Shown here in pieces: positions 18,593 to 36,308 of a stretch of DNA of 64,000 nucleotides. The stretch lies in sequence record PP456879.1, one strand, 5' to 3'. Numbering within the stretch: position 1 is the stretch's first letter; each line of letters starts with the position of its first letter. A model generated the notes under the pieces. That model was not told the origin of the DNA, ran no database searches, and was given only the letters and a program-made list of their open reading frames with translations. The position numbers and the translations under genes were made by a program.

Positions 18593-18622
18593 TATTTACC
18601 TCTTGTATTATTAAACCCCTGA

Positions 18623-19546
18623 TCAATGATCAGGGGCATATTCTAATGCAATACCACTACATTCAAGCAGGTGATCAAACATAGCTACTGGGCGAGATCC
18701 ACCAAATGGAATCTTTTCACGATCAACTGCAACTGGTACAGATGAAGGTTTTTCTGCTGTTAGCCAAGACTCGATAACCGCAGCATGCGCCAATGGGTTA
18801 TTAGTTTGGTCTAAGATTTCAGCAGTCGGACCTGGACCAACTGTACAGTTATATGACCGAGTTTCAGATTCACCGAATGACCGGATAGCTGTTTCTCGAC
18901 CAGGTGTGCTAGCCCTATCAGCATTGTTTAACTTAGAAGGTAGACCAAATGGTTGTGTTTTTACAGATGCTGCTGCTGACCAGTCTTCACCAATCTTTTC
19001 TAGTAGCATCATGTAAAGTGGACCCATTAAGACATTATCTTTAGTTGTTACCCACTTACCAGCTTGATCTCGATAAGATACCTTCCCATAGTGTGGTCGA
19101 TACTTATCGCTATTAATTAATTTGTTGACTGCTGCCATTAGATCCACTGGATCATCAACTGGTGCGTAGATATATGGGAATCCATCCATTAGTACTGTTT
19201 TAACATGTTCTGCTGGATTTGGGTGTTCCATCATTTTACTATGCATTGTTGGAGCAATGATCTCATAGAAACCTAATAGTTCTTTAAATGCATAATCAAC
19301 CCATTGCGTATTACCCATTACACTATTTAGTTGTTGCTGGGTTGGTTTGGCATGTCGATCTAGTCCAGCTTCAACGCGTAGGCGTTGAGCTAGATCTCGT
19401 GCAGCTGCGCCAAAACCATGTTCATAAATTCGACCATAATTTGAACGACGCATGGTTGAACCACCAAAGATAATTAGATCTGCCCTATTACCATTTTCGT
19501 CAATAGGCATATCTTCATCTTCCATTACCTTACAGATGACGCCCTT
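18623..19546 (-). CDS. nvRNAP beta C-terminal subunit, exon 2 (gp73 part of gp71-73)
   Basis: Begins KGVICKVMEDEDMPIDENGNRADLII, matching beta KGVISKI..EDMP.DENG..VDIV; beta GPLYMMLLEK motif. Confidence 0.9.
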   Translation of the reverse strand, partial: KGVICKVMEDEDMPIDENGNRADLIIFGGSTMRRSNYGRIYEHGFGAAARDLAQRLRVEAGLDRHAKPTQQQLNSVMGNTQWVDYAFKELLGFYEIIAPTMHSKMMEHPNPAEHVKTVLMDGFPYIYAPVDDPVDLMAAVNKLINSDKYRPHYGKVSYRDQAGKWVTTKDNVLMGPLYMMLLEKIGEDWSAAASVKTQPFGLPSKLNNADRASTPGRETAIRSFGESETRSYNCTVGPGPTAEILDQTNNPLAHAAVIESWLTAEKPSSVPVAVDREKIPFGGSRPVAMFDHLLECSGIALEYAPDH

Positions 19547-19853
19547 CGTTATGTTCAGGTAAGTTCGCTACGCTTACCCCGCCTCTCGTATTGCAGGCAG
19601 CTGCATGTCACCATGCAGACCAGACTATATCTTAACCTTCACCCTAGGTGGTCAGGTCCCTCCCATTTCCACTCGCTTGAGTGTACTCCGCGTAACCGGA
19701 TAGTCGTTGAACGTTCAATCCATTTCTGGAAAGCTTCGCTGCTGATTGTCTCATTGAGATGTCCCAGCAATTAGAGAGGATTTACTTGACTCTTTCGAGA
19801 TCAAGCAGGCAATTTGACAATATCCATTCCTGAGAGATGGATGGATATTAATT
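19547..19853 (-). mobile_element. Group I intron without ORF (307 nt)
   Basis: P AATTGCTGGGA, Q AATCAGCAG, R GTTCAACGACTA, S AAGATATAGTC; 5' exon ends in U, intron ends in G; P1 GGU|AAUU pairs with AAUUGCC; splicing restores HGG|KGV. Confidence 0.92.
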
Positions 19854-21032
19854 ACCACCATGAAAATCAGTCATCTTGAAAGCACCAGCAGGCATCTTTT
19901 GGGCTTTGTAAGTTACTTCGACTCGCCATTCATCTAGTGGGTCTAGTCGATAGAATCGAGATAGTTTACGGACATTATCAGGTTGAGGTAGGAACATCTG
20001 TGCAGTTACAATAAGACGTTCAAATTCCTCAGTGATATGTAGATCATCTTTACGACGTGCTAATAGACCACGATAGATCTTTAATAGTTCTCGATAATAA
20101 CTGCTAAGATGAGTATGATATTTAACTAGTTGTGCATCCATTCCTGTTGGAGTAGGGGATGGATTTACACGCTCATCACGCCAAATATCAATATCAATAA
20201 CCTTCGCACCAGGTGTGCCAATAACAGCTCTATCGAAAGTTCTATCTAGTGTACGAAGTGCCCTAGGAGTCATCTCGGCAGGAGCTAGATCATCATCATG
20301 GTCACGGATGGCGAAGATTACACCATCTGGTCGGATAACATCGCCAATGTCTGGGAATGGTTTATAGACCTTATCATCGCCATACATGTTTAAGAAGAAA
20401 GCTTTCCTACCAGCATTAGCTACAGCCGTGCTATAACTAGTTGGCATCATCCTTTTAAGGAAATTCTTATTAGCTACGAATCCATCTTCAATGGTACCAG
20501 CGGCAGATAGGAATACAACATTAGCATTAACACCCATCCCTAAAGTACCGTCTTTCTTAACTGCACCAGACTGTGCAATCACTGTGTCTTTAGAGAACAT
20601 TTCATTTGGGGCAATGGTTTCCCACACTTCTCGATTCTTTACAAGTTCATAACCAAAGTCTTGGTGATGACTCATGTACTCGGGAACATGTAAGACACCA
20701 ATGGTTTTATATTTGTCAAAATAGTTTTCGTAGATAATAGTTGTTACCGGGTTAGATCTAATACTGTCTTTACCAATACCCGTTGGATATTTTCTAAGAA
20801 CATGTAGTACACGACAATCCTCAGGAAAACGAACATCATGTGTATACTTGGCATACTCTAATTCAGCACCCGTTAGGAAATAACGCGATTCATTTCCATT
20901 TACTTCTGGTGCCTGGCCAATATGTGTTACAAACATAGCACCCCGTGCAGATGAGGTAGTGCCATACCAAGGATCTAAACCAGTATGCCCTAATAGGGTT
21001 AGATCAATTTCACGTTTACCTAGTTCAGCCAT
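19854..21032 (-). CDS. nvRNAP beta C-terminal subunit, exon 1 (gp71 part; spliced product 700 aa)
   Basis: SSARGAMFVTHIGQA, GTIEDG, FKMTDFHGG beta motifs. Confidence 0.9.
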
Positions 21033-21144
21033 TTTGTTTATCACCATTAATTAGACAAGATGCAGTACTACTATATTTCTTATTTGCGCTGTTTTTAGAT
21101 ATAGCCTTTTGTAAGACTTCAATGTCTGGTATCACCAATCTCAT
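21025..21144 (-). CDS. Unannotated 39-aa leader ORF overlapping the nvRNAP beta start
   Basis: CAGGAGGT-ATG; its TGA overlaps ATGGCTGA of the RNAP subunit. Confidence 0.5.
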   Translation of the reverse strand: MRLVIPDIEVLQKAISKNSANKKYSSTASCLINGDKQNG

Positions 21145-32243: not shown

Positions 32244-32669
32244 TCAGTTATTGGCCGTATATGACCAGCATAGATTAAACGGATGTTGCATAGGTAAGTT
32301 AAATGTATCTAGTTCCTGACCGATCCAATTGACAGCTTTTGTAACACCTTCAACAGTTACAGTTAATTCAACATGGATATCATGTTCAGGTGCAGTCACC
32401 ACAATAGTGATTGGATCATCATGTTTAATACGGAATCCAAACTTAGGATGATGGAATCCAGTATATTCACCTTTAGTATTTTCTAGAATACATTCAAATA
32501 GATTAGTTTCTTTATTAAGTTTAAATGTAACTAGTTTATCTGAATCTTTAAGTAAACCATTATCCCCAAATACATTGAATCGATAATGCTTATGGCAGAT
32601 ACCAAGTGTTTTTGGTACATCATGGGAATTATCGATTTGCTTAGTACATTCGTTGCATTTACTATTCAT
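32244..32669 (-). CDS. Hypothetical protein
   Basis: 141 aa, SD AGG. Confidence 0.7.
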   Translation of the reverse strand: MNSKCNECTKQIDNSHDVPKTLGICHKHYRFNVFGDNGLLKDSDKLVTFKLNKETNLFECILENTKGEYTGFHHPKFGFRIKHDDPITIVVTAPEHDIHVELTVTVEGVTKAVNWIGQELDTFNLPMQHPFNLCWSYTANN

Positions 32670-32681
32670 CTTTATTTACCT

Positions 32682-33065
32682 TTAATAGATTTGTTTATCA
32701 AAAGAACAATTGATTGGAATAGTGATAACTTCATTAGTAATTACATGTTTACCTGTCTTTTTAAAGAATTGTGCAAATTTTGAAGTAGCTGGAATTACAA
32801 GGGTATCATCCCGATCATTATTTGACATATTGTAAAAAGTAAACTTACCGTCTAGGTTAAACCTAATGCACCACTTAATATTTCGTATTTTGAAATCTAT
32901 ACCAAATCTTAAATGACCATCAATCAATTCAGAACCACCGTATTCATAAGCTCCGGTGAAATTCCAATTAATTTCTGATAATTGGAAAGTTACAGGATGT
33001 TCGCCATATTCATCTTGTATGTAGTAACCATCATGAGCTTTCCAATAGATAACTAAATCATGCAT
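32682..33065 (-). CDS. Hypothetical protein
   Basis: 127 aa, SD GAGG. Confidence 0.7.
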   Translation of the reverse strand: MHDLVIYWKAHDGYYIQDEYGEHPVTFQLSEINWNFTGAYEYGGSELIDGHLRFGIDFKIRNIKWCIRFNLDGKFTFYNMSNNDRDDTLVIPATSKFAQFFKKTGKHVITNEVITIPINCSFDKQIY

Positions 33066-33124
33066 ACTACTAGCCTCAAAGAATTAATAGGGGATTCAAA
33101 CTCCCCTATTAATTTATTTTGCTT

Positions 33125-33313
33125 TTAATCATTAAGCTTAGAGATCATTTCGACATATGCATCGACAAACCTTCTGTTTACCACTACATCACCATTCCCG
33201 CAAGTAATATATCTCTTAGTGAATACGGCTACCGATCTGGCTTCACGTTCATCTCATTCGACTTGTGATAAACATTCCGGGTTACGTCGAATAATTTCAC
33301 GAATATTAGACAT
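33125..33313 (-). pseudogene. 62-codon small gene interrupted by in-frame TGA at codon 20
   Basis: SD GGGG, own promoter motif; MSNIREIIRRNPECLSQVE*DEREARSVAVFTKRYITCGNGDVVVNRRFVDAYVEMISKLND*. Confidence 0.55.
33204..33211 (-). promoter_or_regulatory. Early promoter TATATTAC (internal)
   Basis: Exact core, upstream of the 33065/32669 genes. Confidence 0.5.
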
Positions 33314-33344
33314 TGGGTATTCCCCTTATCACTATTGCATCTTA

Positions 33345-33352
33345 GTGATATA
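33345..33352 (-). promoter_or_regulatory. Early promoter variant TATATCAC
   Basis: tttcAGATTTATATCAC ~30 nt upstream of ATG 33313. Confidence 0.55.
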
Positions 33353-33419
33353 AATCTGAAATTAAATCCAGTGGAACTTTACATCCATGGTTAGTCGCCG
33401 CCATAACAGGAAATAAAGC

Positions 33420-33444
33420 CCCCTACTACATAAATAGTAGGGGT
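33420..33444 (-). terminator. Terminator after nvRNAP beta' exon 2
   Basis: CCCCTACTA-cataaa-TAGTAGGGG. Confidence 0.75.
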
Positions 33445-33454
33445 AAGTTTATTA

Positions 33455-33673
33455 TTACGACTTCAACCATTCTTCTAATGGCGGTAAATACTTCTCATGC
33501 GCCCAGTTAATAATTGTTTCTACAACAGGACCCTGTAATTCAAGGTTACCTGAGATTTCATGTGGTTCATCAATAGATAGAACCCATGTATGTGGAGCAA
33601 TGCGTTCAGTTGCTTTGGTTAAATACACATCAGGCATTAACGTTAAATTCAATTGATCGCCGTCAAAATCCGC
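33455..33673 (-). CDS. nvRNAP beta' N-terminal subunit, exon 2 (gp56.1)
   Basis: Starts GCG GAT TTT GAC GGC GAT = ADFDGD, completing the catalytic motif. Confidence 0.92.
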   Translation of the reverse strand, partial: ADFDGDQLNLTLMPDVYLTKATERIAPHTWVLSIDEPHEISGNLELQGPVVETIINWAHEKYLPPLEEWLKS

Positions 33674-35063
33674 CGTTATGTTCAGTATGGGTCGTTAATC
33701 CATACCCGGTAGTATAATTACCACATGATAATTACCACCTGCTGCATGTCGCCATGCAGACCAGACTATATCTTCACCCTTCCTTTCGGAGTAGGGTGTC
33801 TCCCATTTCGAGTCACTTGACTCTACATCCTATTTCTAGGACCGGCGCACCTGATACCGTAATAGTCGTTGAACCTTCTCCTATTCCTAAATGGAATGTT
33901 ACGGAGCTTGGCTGCTGATTGTCCCTACCTAATCTTTTTCAAACCTTGGCTTTGTCTTTCGACTCGCAGTGGTAGATTAGTTTAACAGGATATCCCAGCA
34001 ATTAGAGAGAACTCATCCCAATGATTACTCATTGGGGGAACTAGACTTGATTAACTTAATAAGGTATTTATCAAGCACTCCATTCTTTTCAAAGATTGCT
34101 CTTCGAACAGTATTCGGATGCTTAATACCGACATCTCTTGCAAAGTGTGGAATACTCGGATACACTTTGGTAGTGTTCAAGATGGTGTCGGTTACTTCAA
34201 TTGGAGTACCTTTTCCATTACTAGGTTTTCCAAATGAGGCTTCAATTTCTTTCTGAGTATATTTAGGGAAATCTTCAGGATTAGCGGTATAGGAGAATAC
34301 CAAACCATCCATGATTTCCTTACTACCTCTAACTAGATGGTAATAGGCTTTATTACGTTTAGTACCTAGTGCAAGTTCCATTTCTGCTAAGTTATGGAAC
34401 ACATGCAATGTCTTAGTCTTATAGTCTAAAACATAAACTGTCTTGGTACTTTCACGATCAGCAATCTTAGTCTCACCGGTAATAAATTCAAATGTGAATC
34501 TATTTCTATACGGCTTAGTCTTATGGTCACGTATAATAACCCAAACCGTATTTTTATTAACTCCTAATGCCCGAGCAAGTTCACTCATCGAGTAATAAGT
34601 AGTCTTTTCACCAGTGGTAACATCAGTTGCAATTACCCGTCTATTTTCTTTTCTTAATCCATTTTTGTAAGCATGCTCAATGTTTTCACCACGAGTCATC
34701 CACTCCAAATTAGATGGTAAGTTATTATGTTTGTTACCGTCTTTATGATTGACTTCATAATTTGGTCCAGGTGATGGACCATGGAATGCGGTACAAATTA
34801 GAATATGTGATAATGTAGAATTACTTCTGCCATTATCATTTTTTGCACCCAGCTTCAGATATGAACCAGTTGAAGTAGGTACTTTGTATAACTTACATAT
34901 TCTATTTAACCGCTTATGACGAATTGTTCCTAAGTTACTAGCTTCATATGCTGAGTATCCAGGAATATCCCGCCATTCAATTTTAAATGAAGCCGGATCA
35001 AAGACGGACACTACTCCGTTTTGTTCCATTGTTTTTACCCTTATTTAGTTATTTGCTTATCCG
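33674..35063 (-). mobile_element. Group I intron (1390 nt) carrying a homing endonuclease
   Basis: P/Q/R/S elements at ~33770-34000; exon ends CCTAAT (U), intron ends AACATAACG; splicing gives KAPN|ADFDGDQ. Confidence 0.93.
34025..35029 (-). CDS. Intron-encoded HNH homing endonuclease (NUMOD4-HNH-NUMOD1 repeats; gp56-like)
   Basis: WRDIPGYSAYEASNLG (NUMOD4); VNHKDGNKHNNLPSNLEW (HNH); three NUMOD1-like repeats. Confidence 0.92.
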   Translation of the reverse strand: MEQNGVVSVFDPASFKIEWRDIPGYSAYEASNLGTIRHKRLNRICKLYKVPTSTGSYLKLGAKNDNGRSNSTLSHILICTAFHGPSPGPNYEVNHKDGNKHNNLPSNLEWMTRGENIEHAYKNGLRKENRRVIATDVTTGEKTTYYSMSELARALGVNKNTVWVIIRDHKTKPYRNRFTFEFITGETKIADRESTKTVYVLDYKTKTLHVFHNLAEMELALGTKRNKAYYHLVRGSKEIMDGLVFSYTANPEDFPKYTQKEIEASFGKPSNGKGTPIEVTDTILNTTKVYPSIPHFARDVGIKHPNTVRRAIFEKNGVLDKYLIKLIKSSSPNE

Positions 35064-36308
35064 ATTAGGCGCTTTAAGGCATAAAACTGACATGCTGATA
35101 GAATTATCATTAATGTCATCTTTTACTTTAGTAATAAAGAACTGCTGCGTAGATCCACGTTGAAGCGTTGGATTTCGGTGAAAAGTACAACCCATCCCTT
35201 TATAAGGGGCTGCTTCTGCAATTAGCTCTTTAAATAGATCTGCAATGATTTGGTTATATTGAAGTACATTCTCATATACAAATGAGAATGCTTCACGAGT
35301 TGTCATGTTAAACTTTGCTTTTAGTTTATTGGTTAGATGATACTTTAATAATTGACAACCTACCCCCCAAGGGATATGTAGTTCATCATAATCATGCGGG
35401 TCACTAATAGAAGTGATTACTGCACGTGCCGTAGCGTTGAGACGAGCACCAAACATGTGACGCCGAGCAAGACCAGGCTTTTGAGCAATTCGTGATTTTG
35501 CGTAGATCTCGTAGAACTGGCCATATAGTCTTAGTCCTCGCATAGTCCTATTCTGAGCTTTAATTGGACTAAGTGGTACAGATGATGCATCAATACTAGC
35601 GAAGGTTAAGGTAGCATCAATTGCTGCTTCAATTGGTTTATCTAAGTAAGTACCAGATGTGGTTGATTCTGCTACGAAACAGAGTTTAGAAGGAACTGGT
35701 AAATATTTAGGGAATAACTTATCTTTATTCTGAGCAACGAATTGAGCGAATTCGGATTTATTATTAGAGATAATATTTGCATCTAGTAGGAATTGGAAGA
35801 TCTCATTGAAATTATCAATGAAGTGATTTAATCCTCTTTCAAATCCTCGATGCAGTAGCCTATCTACTTTCCTGCGTGTTTCCTTAGAACCAATAGATTC
35901 TACATCGTATCGATAAGAAGTATCAGTTAGATATGCTAAGAAATCGAATTCTTTAGTTACTAGATATCCGGTTAGCATAATGATTAAACGTGGGTTAATT
36001 AGGCTACGTACATGTTTTGGTGTACGAACCCACATTGATGGTTCGATAGGACGGCTAGAAGTATTGACAACTGGAGTATTACAAATATCACAGATTACTC
36101 CGAGTTTATGTGCGTCTTCGATTGCTCGACAATCACAGCTTACACTACTTTCAATTGCTTCTGAATCTTGGAAATGAGAATAGAAATGCCTATCAAATTC
36201 TTCTTTCTCATCTGAGTTACTCGTATTGTAATCATTGGCATAAATTCGTTTACCCGTAAATTGATCATGAACTTCATTATGATCAACAACTTTGGCATAA
36301 AGACCCAT
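35064..36308 (-). CDS. nvRNAP beta' N-terminal subunit, exon 1 (gp55; spliced product 487 aa)
   Basis: Zn ribbon CDC...CDIC, RRHMFGARLNATARAVI, FHRNPTLQRGS beta' motifs. Confidence 0.92.

Follow-up and report, generated by a model that had tools for sequence, protein, structure and literature searches.

The stretch of DNA analysed here (the window, 64,000 nt of sequence record PP456879.1) carries on its minus strand a gene for a beta-like subunit of the non-virion RNA polymerase (nvRNAP), split by a short group I intron. Exon 1 (19854..21032; residues 1–393; equivalent to phiKZ gp71) and exon 2 (18623..19546; residues 394–700 and the stop codon; equivalent to phiKZ gp73) were queried as separate searches with no joined model, and both matched PDB chain 7ogp_C, the 700-aa phiKZ nvRNAP subunit gp71-73 (E values of 6e-272 and 1e-211, respectively), on which they abut at residues 393/394. 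An alternative in-frame ATG for exon 1 is found at 21047, five codons upstream, and the KTN4 record labels the exon 1 product as a putative non-virion RNAP subunit. The 307-nt ORF-less intron between the exons (19547..19853), of an IA2-like subgroup, was delimited by Rfam model RF00028, the MFE fold and phiKZ RNA-seq contigs. On the minus strand, exon 1 ends in TTT CAT GGT GGT (F H G G, the last GGT at 19856-19854) and is followed by AAT TAA as the first intron bases, while the intron ends in CAUAACG with its terminal G at 19547 and exon 2 begins with AAG GGC GTC (K G V) from 19546. The initial annotation had placed the same splice sites in an nvRNAP beta-like gene (phiKZ gp71/73) and proposed that removal of a group I intron restores FKMTDFHGG↓KGV and a 700-aa protein, and the Rfam match and the mapping of the exons to residues 1–393 and 394–700 of 7ogp_C bear this out.

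The intron lies between G393 and K394, the lysine of the catalytic site with which exon 2 starts. Exon 2 matches Pfam RNA_pol_Rpb2_6, and its residues 1–57 align to E. coli beta 1073–1129 with K394 opposite K1073, therefore the intron directly precedes the conserved catalytic-site lysine, which is one of the two DPBB lysines (PMC8287921). Over 18600–21100, the window matches Pseudomonas phage KTN4 and about 20 further phiKZ-like phages at 100% identity, and phiKZ-type strains at 98%. Because the region 32600–35100 is 100% identical only to vB_Pae10145-KEN51, the window is by sequence from a KEN51-like Phikzvirus. Most database records list the gene as two separate CDSs; about 40 public phiKZ-like genomes hold an essential polymerase subunit as two unrelated "hypothetical proteins" or two "RNA polymerase" CDSs, for which one spliced 700-aa gene would be the proper annotation.

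Rfam found two group I introns in the window, both on the minus strand (19601–19829 with 84.2 bits and 33742–34062 with 85.3 bits). The first, which concerns us here, covers the full model (1–253 of 253; gathering score of 50; E value of 5.9e-20). Its P1 consists of 7 bp between GGU↓AAUU (19850..19856) and the internal guide sequence AAUUGCC (19808..19814), with a U19854-G19810 wobble at the 5' splice site, which follows U19854. This pairing, including the U-G pair claimed earlier for the splice site, is present in the sequence and in both the MFE and centroid folds. Within the P1 loop, fold and comparison with ORF-containing relatives define a P1 extension hairpin (19819..19849) with a 9-bp stem (AAUAUCCAU/AUGGAUAUU), as had been described, and a 13-nt loop (CCAUCUCUCAGGA). 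It is followed by P2 (19785..19805; 8 bp, one bulged U and a GAAA loop), the catalytic core aligned by Rfam (P3, P4, P5, P6/P6a, P7, P7.1, P7.2, P8 and P9; 19601..19780), and the 3' peripheral hairpins P9.1 and P9.2 of the fold together with the terminal G (19547..19600). The description of the 307 nt as holding a complete core thus agrees with the full-length model match and the canonical helices of the fold.

The unconstrained MFE fold of a 320-nt precursor recovered P1, the 9-bp P1 extension, P2–P6, P7.1, P7.2, P8, P9, P9.1 and P9.2, with GAAA, GAAA and GUGA loops on P2, P6a and P9, whereas P7 (GACUA/UAGUC), a pseudoknot, was assigned by eye. None of 100 shuffled sequences folded as well as the precursor (z = -3.27), and the 5' 77 nt folded alone gave z = -4.5. 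P7.1 (UCCG/CGGA) and P7.2 (CACUC/GAGUG) are both predicted between P7 and P3', the arrangement that defines subgroup IA2. All 69 modelled pairs are canonical in each of the four close variants, and the substitutions at paired positions among these (n = 3) keep pairing in every case: P2 pair 55:64 is C-G, U-G or U-A, P8 pair 197:219 changes from A-U to G-U, and P9.2 pair 276:296 changes from G-C to G-U. Relative to the paralogous second intron of the window (intron 2), compensatory two-sided changes occur in P7.2, P9.1 and P9.2; intron 2 and the intron of phage phiPA3 were compared only at the cleanly aligned P7, P7.1, P7.2, P9.1 and P9.2, as MAFFT misaligned P2–P5 around large insertions. These substitutions at paired positions count for selection on RNA structure, as judged from aligned sequences. 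Changes at intron positions 197 and 220 in T2P-type alleles were considered as a compensatory P8 pair and rejected, since 197 pairs with 219 in the fold; in that register the first turns an A-U pair into G-U and the second falls in J8/7. Introns 1 and 2 have the P7–P9 segment in common and end in the same 12 nt (CUGAACAUAACG).

The only open frames in the intron encode 43 aa (sense, with a TTG start) and 53 aa (antisense), and neither has a Pfam match, in line with the earlier statement that the intron lacks an ORF. A tblastn search of the window locus with gp72 homologues, the proteins encoded in the corresponding intron of relatives, likewise gave no match.

RNA-seq contigs from four phiKZ studies (runs X1, X7, X8 and X11) join 19544 to 19852 and skip 307 nt. 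This joint equals the 19547–19853 junction, with two bases being ambiguous because the intron and exon 2 both begin with AA. In run X11, one 2201-nt contig covers both exons. The unspliced form occurs in the same runs as well, with a block of 911 nt in its P1 loop (916 letters in place of 5). The joined contigs carry exactly the 37 + 7 exon differences that separate phiKZ from the window, while the differences of the intronless phage KEN49 lie at 21 + 15 other positions; the joined contigs therefore represent spliced RNA from an intron-containing strain and not an intronless contaminant. All four runs report on the phiKZ allele, and contigs indicate the presence of spliced RNA and not its efficiency. 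Some intron-containing contigs stop at 19547 (X7), or reach 19546 and continue into Illumina adapter (X8), at or next to the terminal G; such ends are as expected for abundant excised intron RNA, although contigs cannot prove RNA ends. A further contig joint, from 19637 to 19758 (skipping 120 letters, with 210 letters between), was considered as alternative splicing and rejected, as it is the paralogous intron 2 matching two common 21-nt core segments.

The core of the window intron differs from that of phiKZ at only 1 of 272 nt, an unpaired position. One could suppose that the intron is a decayed relic which no longer splices, the two ORFs being made as separate polypeptides, as the two CDSs annotated in most records would have it. 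For gp56, gp72 and gp179, a long-read study of phiKZ is reported to have given no sign of splicing (PMC10914365), which fits such a relic and conflicts with the exact junction in short-read contigs of four studies. However, the split would fall within the universally conserved HGxKG catalytic segment, the 84-bit core has all helices intact with conservative substitutions only, four RNA-seq data sets show splicing of the near-identical phiKZ core, and the fused protein is present in the native enzyme: in nvRNAP purified from infected cells, gp71-73 is a single 74-kDa polypeptide (PMC4666361). We therefore consider a non-splicing relic scarcely credible. The ORF-less intron is real and almost certainly functional; splicing of the ORF-less allele itself is predicted from its near-identity to the phiKZ core, and it is implied by the viability of the phage because the gene is essential.

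Taken together, what the window carries is very probably a functional allele of the gp71/73 group I intron (between Gly393 and Lys394) that lost its endonuclease ORF by deletion. In the proposed mechanism, the transcript would fold as a compact IA2-type ribozyme, running from P1 to P9.2 with P7.1 and P7.2, guanosine would attack after the U of the P1 U-G pair, and the terminal G would direct ligation of the exons into an mRNA for the 700-aa subunit. The ancestral intron would have held an I-HmuI-like HNH gene in its P1-extension loop, as the phiKZ intron still does, and a deletion of about 911 bp would have taken out this gene and left the short hairpin. Such an intron would be unable to promote its own homing, and it would persist because the gene is essential and only exact excision is tolerated at these codons.

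To place this allele among its relatives, we surveyed 47 phiKZ-like records in the phage collection. The ORF-less intron is present in 41 of them, comprising 36 KTN4-type records (at least 99.3% identity over 801 nt), PaZh_1 (KTN4-type with a 29-nt gap) and four T2P-type records with 6 extra nt; the ORF-less sequence is 100% identical in about 30 records. Five records from four phages (phiKZ, OMKO1, fMGyn-Pae01 and FBPa36) have the intron with a 316-aa HNH ORF in the P1 loop, so the possibility that relatives never carry an ORF there, which would have spoken against a loss, did not hold. The only intronless record of the 47 is KEN49 (vB_Pae3705-KEN49, PP456877.1), annotated as one 705-codon CDS, which reads FHGGKGV straight through and encodes FKMTDFHGGKGVICKV (1736–1760 of locus L004). 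The more distant HPP-Temi is also intronless. At the same codon boundary, phiPA3 (HQ630627.1), from another genus, has an ORF-less group I intron of 450 nt (79.2 bits; L007:2247–2696), with GGUUC/GAGCC as its P1; the phiPA3 record marks this region of the gp71/73 homologue only as a "fragment" misc_feature. The gap in PaZh_1 (MN871489.1, UNVERIFIED_ORG; L009:301–1072) removes 29 nt over P4–P5 of the core. This gap should abolish splicing of an essential gene, and it is likely an assembly error from sequence common to the paralogous intron.

Group I introns without an ORF, like the homing cycle itself, are textbook knowledge. For this particular ORF-less allele and its scar, for KEN49 as an intronless allele and for the corresponding intron of phiPA3, we found no published description. 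The paper on KTN4 (PMC4908380) goes no further than to say that KTN4 and phiKZ differ in their predicted HNH endonucleases.

The initial annotation had the HNH gene gp72 in this intron of phiKZ, and it does lie there, in the same P1 loop. In phiKZ, OMKO1 and FBPa36, a 911-nt block with the 316-aa HNH ORF occupies the P1-extension loop and is closed by a 14-bp stem, and the last ~14 codons and the stop codon of the ORF run through the internal guide sequence and P2. Pfam scores for gp72 lie around the cut-offs (HNH_3 24.1 bits against a cut-off of 24.8; NUMOD4 20.2 and 24.8 bits in two alleles against a cut-off of 23.4), while phmmer aligns residues 4–102 with I-HmuI (PDB 1u3e) at an E value of 6e-10. 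At the family level, gp72 is clearly I-HmuI-like as far as these similarity searches go. The phiKZ-type and FBPa36-type alleles are both intact and share 81–82% DNA identity (L006:1596–2546 versus L001:1683–2633), with 84 codons differing synonymously and 58 non-synonymously, whereas the core and exons flanking them are about 98% identical. The divergence of the ORF alleles is thus about tenfold that of their flanks, so that the history of the ORF is partly its own, by replacement or re-invasion.

Aligning the window with phiKZ gp71-73 maps the difference between the two introns to the ~911-nt block in the P1 loop, with the closing stem shortened from 14 bp (AAUAUCCAUCCAUC/GAUGGAUGGAUAUU in ORF-containing alleles) to 9 bp. 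In the loop of the window hairpin, the orphaned 5' half-stem CCAUC is unpaired and is accompanied by AGGA, a leftover of a ribosome-binding site. The hairpin at 19819..19849 is, to judge from this comparison, the scar of the endonuclease-gene deletion, and the leftover (CUCUCAGGA) is too short to assign to a source endonuclease allele. The T2P-type ORF-less allele is more informative, as the ATG of the endonuclease and its ribosome-binding site are still there (AGGAGGUGAGAUG), with the fusion at a GAUG microhomology; the UUUUAGGAGGUGAGAUG of this allele corresponds to the ribosome-binding site and start codon of the FBPa36 ORF (16/17 identical), joined to the last bases of that ORF. The window junction is the T2P junction minus six bases.

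These leftovers need to be weighed against the opposite direction, in which the ORF-less intron is ancestral and an HNH gene entered the P1 loop later, at least twice (giving rise to the alleles of phiKZ type and of FBPa36 type). Independent colonisation of introns by endonuclease genes is known, the form without an ORF far outnumbers the others (41/47 records), and HNH alleles that differ by 19% in DNA within a flanking core differing by less than 2% are what different sources would produce. The partly separate history of gp72 leaves room for gain or replacement events and, on these sequence comparisons, counts against simple loss. Nevertheless, both ORF alleles have exactly the same boundaries, the T2P loop consists of the ORF's own ribosome-binding site and start joined to its last bases, an insertion would need to land in frame right after a pre-existing ATG, and the orphan half-stem of the window has its partner only in ORF-containing alleles. 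In addition, phiPA3 holds matching start and end leftovers: the 5' part of its intron is collinear with the gp72 ORF, matching 9/10 nt at the start and 19/23 nt at the end (ENLDGWIF versus EDFNGWIF), matches that are by themselves weakly consistent with loss. An ancestral ORF-less intron is on balance quite improbable, and the sequences point to derivation of the ORF-less allele by deletion of an endonuclease gene.

The core downstream of the loop falls into two haplotypes separated by five fixed differences. Haplotype 1 comprises the KTN4-type (no ORF) and phiKZ (ORF) with 1 difference between them, and haplotype 2 comprises T2P (no ORF) and FBPa36 (ORF) with 3 differences. Both core haplotypes thus occur in an ORF-containing and an ORF-less version. 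This is explained most simply by two deletions, so that the gene was probably deleted twice; one deletion followed by recombination may also account for it. The suggestion in the initial annotation that this isolate lost the endonuclease consequently stands in its direction, given the deletion leftovers, but not in its scope, as this is the majority allele (41/47 records) and the loss is old and shared. The same genome also keeps another endonuclease, a 334-aa HNH gene in the second nvRNAP intron. Endonuclease loss is an ordinary stage in the life cycle of a selfish element.

A different question is why the ORF-less allele is so common. The initial annotation proposed that the isolate stays immune to homing because the target site is still interrupted, from which it could follow that the ORF-less intron is selected as a shield, splitting the gp72 recognition site in mixed infections with phiKZ-type phages. 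Between nucleus-forming phages that co-infect a cell, intron endonucleases serve as weapons (PMC11620839), and the dominance of the ORF-less allele is in keeping with such a role. In KEN49, moreover, four synonymous changes lie no more than 9 nt from the insertion site, as though the empty site had been modified (GGAGGG↓AAGGGAGTT versus GGTGGT↓AAGGGCGTC in the window; P about 2e-4 for this stretch, against 1.7% difference overall). Such clustering is not unique, however, as a second 18-nt stretch ~50 nt upstream also has four differences. The gp72 protein is I-HmuI-like, and I-HmuI and I-HmuII cleave DNA both with and without the intron (PMC3428280), so that interruption of a site does not necessarily confer protection. 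Persistence of the intron is equally explained if exact deletion alone is viable. We regard selection as a shield as unlikely, and immunity to homing through the interrupted target is doubtful on this analogy. The ORF could even return by recombination within the flanking intron homology on both sides.

All intron-containing alleles keep GGU GGU, which P1 requires, and KEN49 lacks the GGU of P1; its allele may be a homing recipient or a cleavage-resistant site. A more far-reaching scenario would have three homing stages coexisting at the catalytic Lys codon, the ORF-less intron dominating as a cost-free vaccination against gp72-type attack and KEN49 surviving through synonymous changes in the target. 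We hold this to be somewhat less likely still than the simple shield; if true, nucleus-forming phages would be keeping the ORF-less intron under selection as a means of defence, and it would not be debris. Closely related culturable phages with an empty site, with intron and endonuclease, and with the intron alone form a natural test set, which could probe endonucleases as inter-phage weapons and the ORF-less intron as protection.

Among the closest known systems is the phiKZ gp71-gp72-gp73 intron itself (PHIKZ071/072/073), which shares the gene, insertion site and splice sites and is identical to the window at 271 of 272 core positions downstream of the P1 loop. It is 1218 nt long and holds the 316-aa gp72 within a 14-bp closing stem, compared to 307 nt, no ORF and a 9-bp stem in the window. 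An intron containing gp72 was predicted in phiKZ by Mesyanzhinov et al. 2002, as cited in PMC10914365. The architecture with P7.1 and P7.2 is that of T4 td/nrdB-type IA2 introns, and the P7–P9 segment of the window is about 80% identical to that of the T4 td intron over 84 nt. Like the window intron, T4 nrdB is a non-mobile intron left after endonuclease loss in the T-even phages (PMC1865063); its ORF is truncated and not cleanly excised. The host genes of T4 td and nrdB belong to nucleotide metabolism, whereas that of the window intron is an RNA polymerase subunit and its ORF site is the P1 loop.

The DNA polymerase introns of SPO1 and SP82, with I-HmuI and I-HmuII, resemble the window intron in lying at the catalytic motif of a polymerase, and gp72 of the relatives belongs to the same endonuclease family (NUMOD4 + HNH_3), being 316 aa long compared to 174 aa for I-HmuI; the window intron, unlike those of SPO1 and SP82, has no endonuclease. 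Like the window intron, that of phiPA3 gp210 belongs to group I and interrupts the gene for an RNAP beta-type subunit; its host, too, is a nucleus-forming Pseudomonas jumbo phage with co-infecting relatives. The gp210 intron lies in the virion RNAP gene and has an active endonuclease that was shown to harm phiKZ (Birkholz et al. 2024, PMC11620839), whereas the window intron lies in the non-virion RNAP gene and, with no endonuclease, carries no such weapon.

Intron 2 of the window (33674–35063, minus strand; RF00028, 85.3 bits) interrupts gp55, the nvRNAP beta'-like gene, within its catalytic NADFDGD motif (between N415 and A416), with gp55 exon 1 matching 7ogp_A 21–435 and exon 2 matching 7ogp_A 436–506. 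The 334-aa HNH endonuclease that it keeps (ORF 34025–35029, minus strand) has three NUMOD1 domains, HNH_3 and NUMOD4, and shares 27% identity with gp72 over 150 aa. The region around the gp55 intron (32600–35100) is highly mosaic among phiKZ-like phages: in place of the full identity seen with KEN51, KTN4 and phiKZ match it in three pieces (92.7%), and coverage by many others is only 40–65%.
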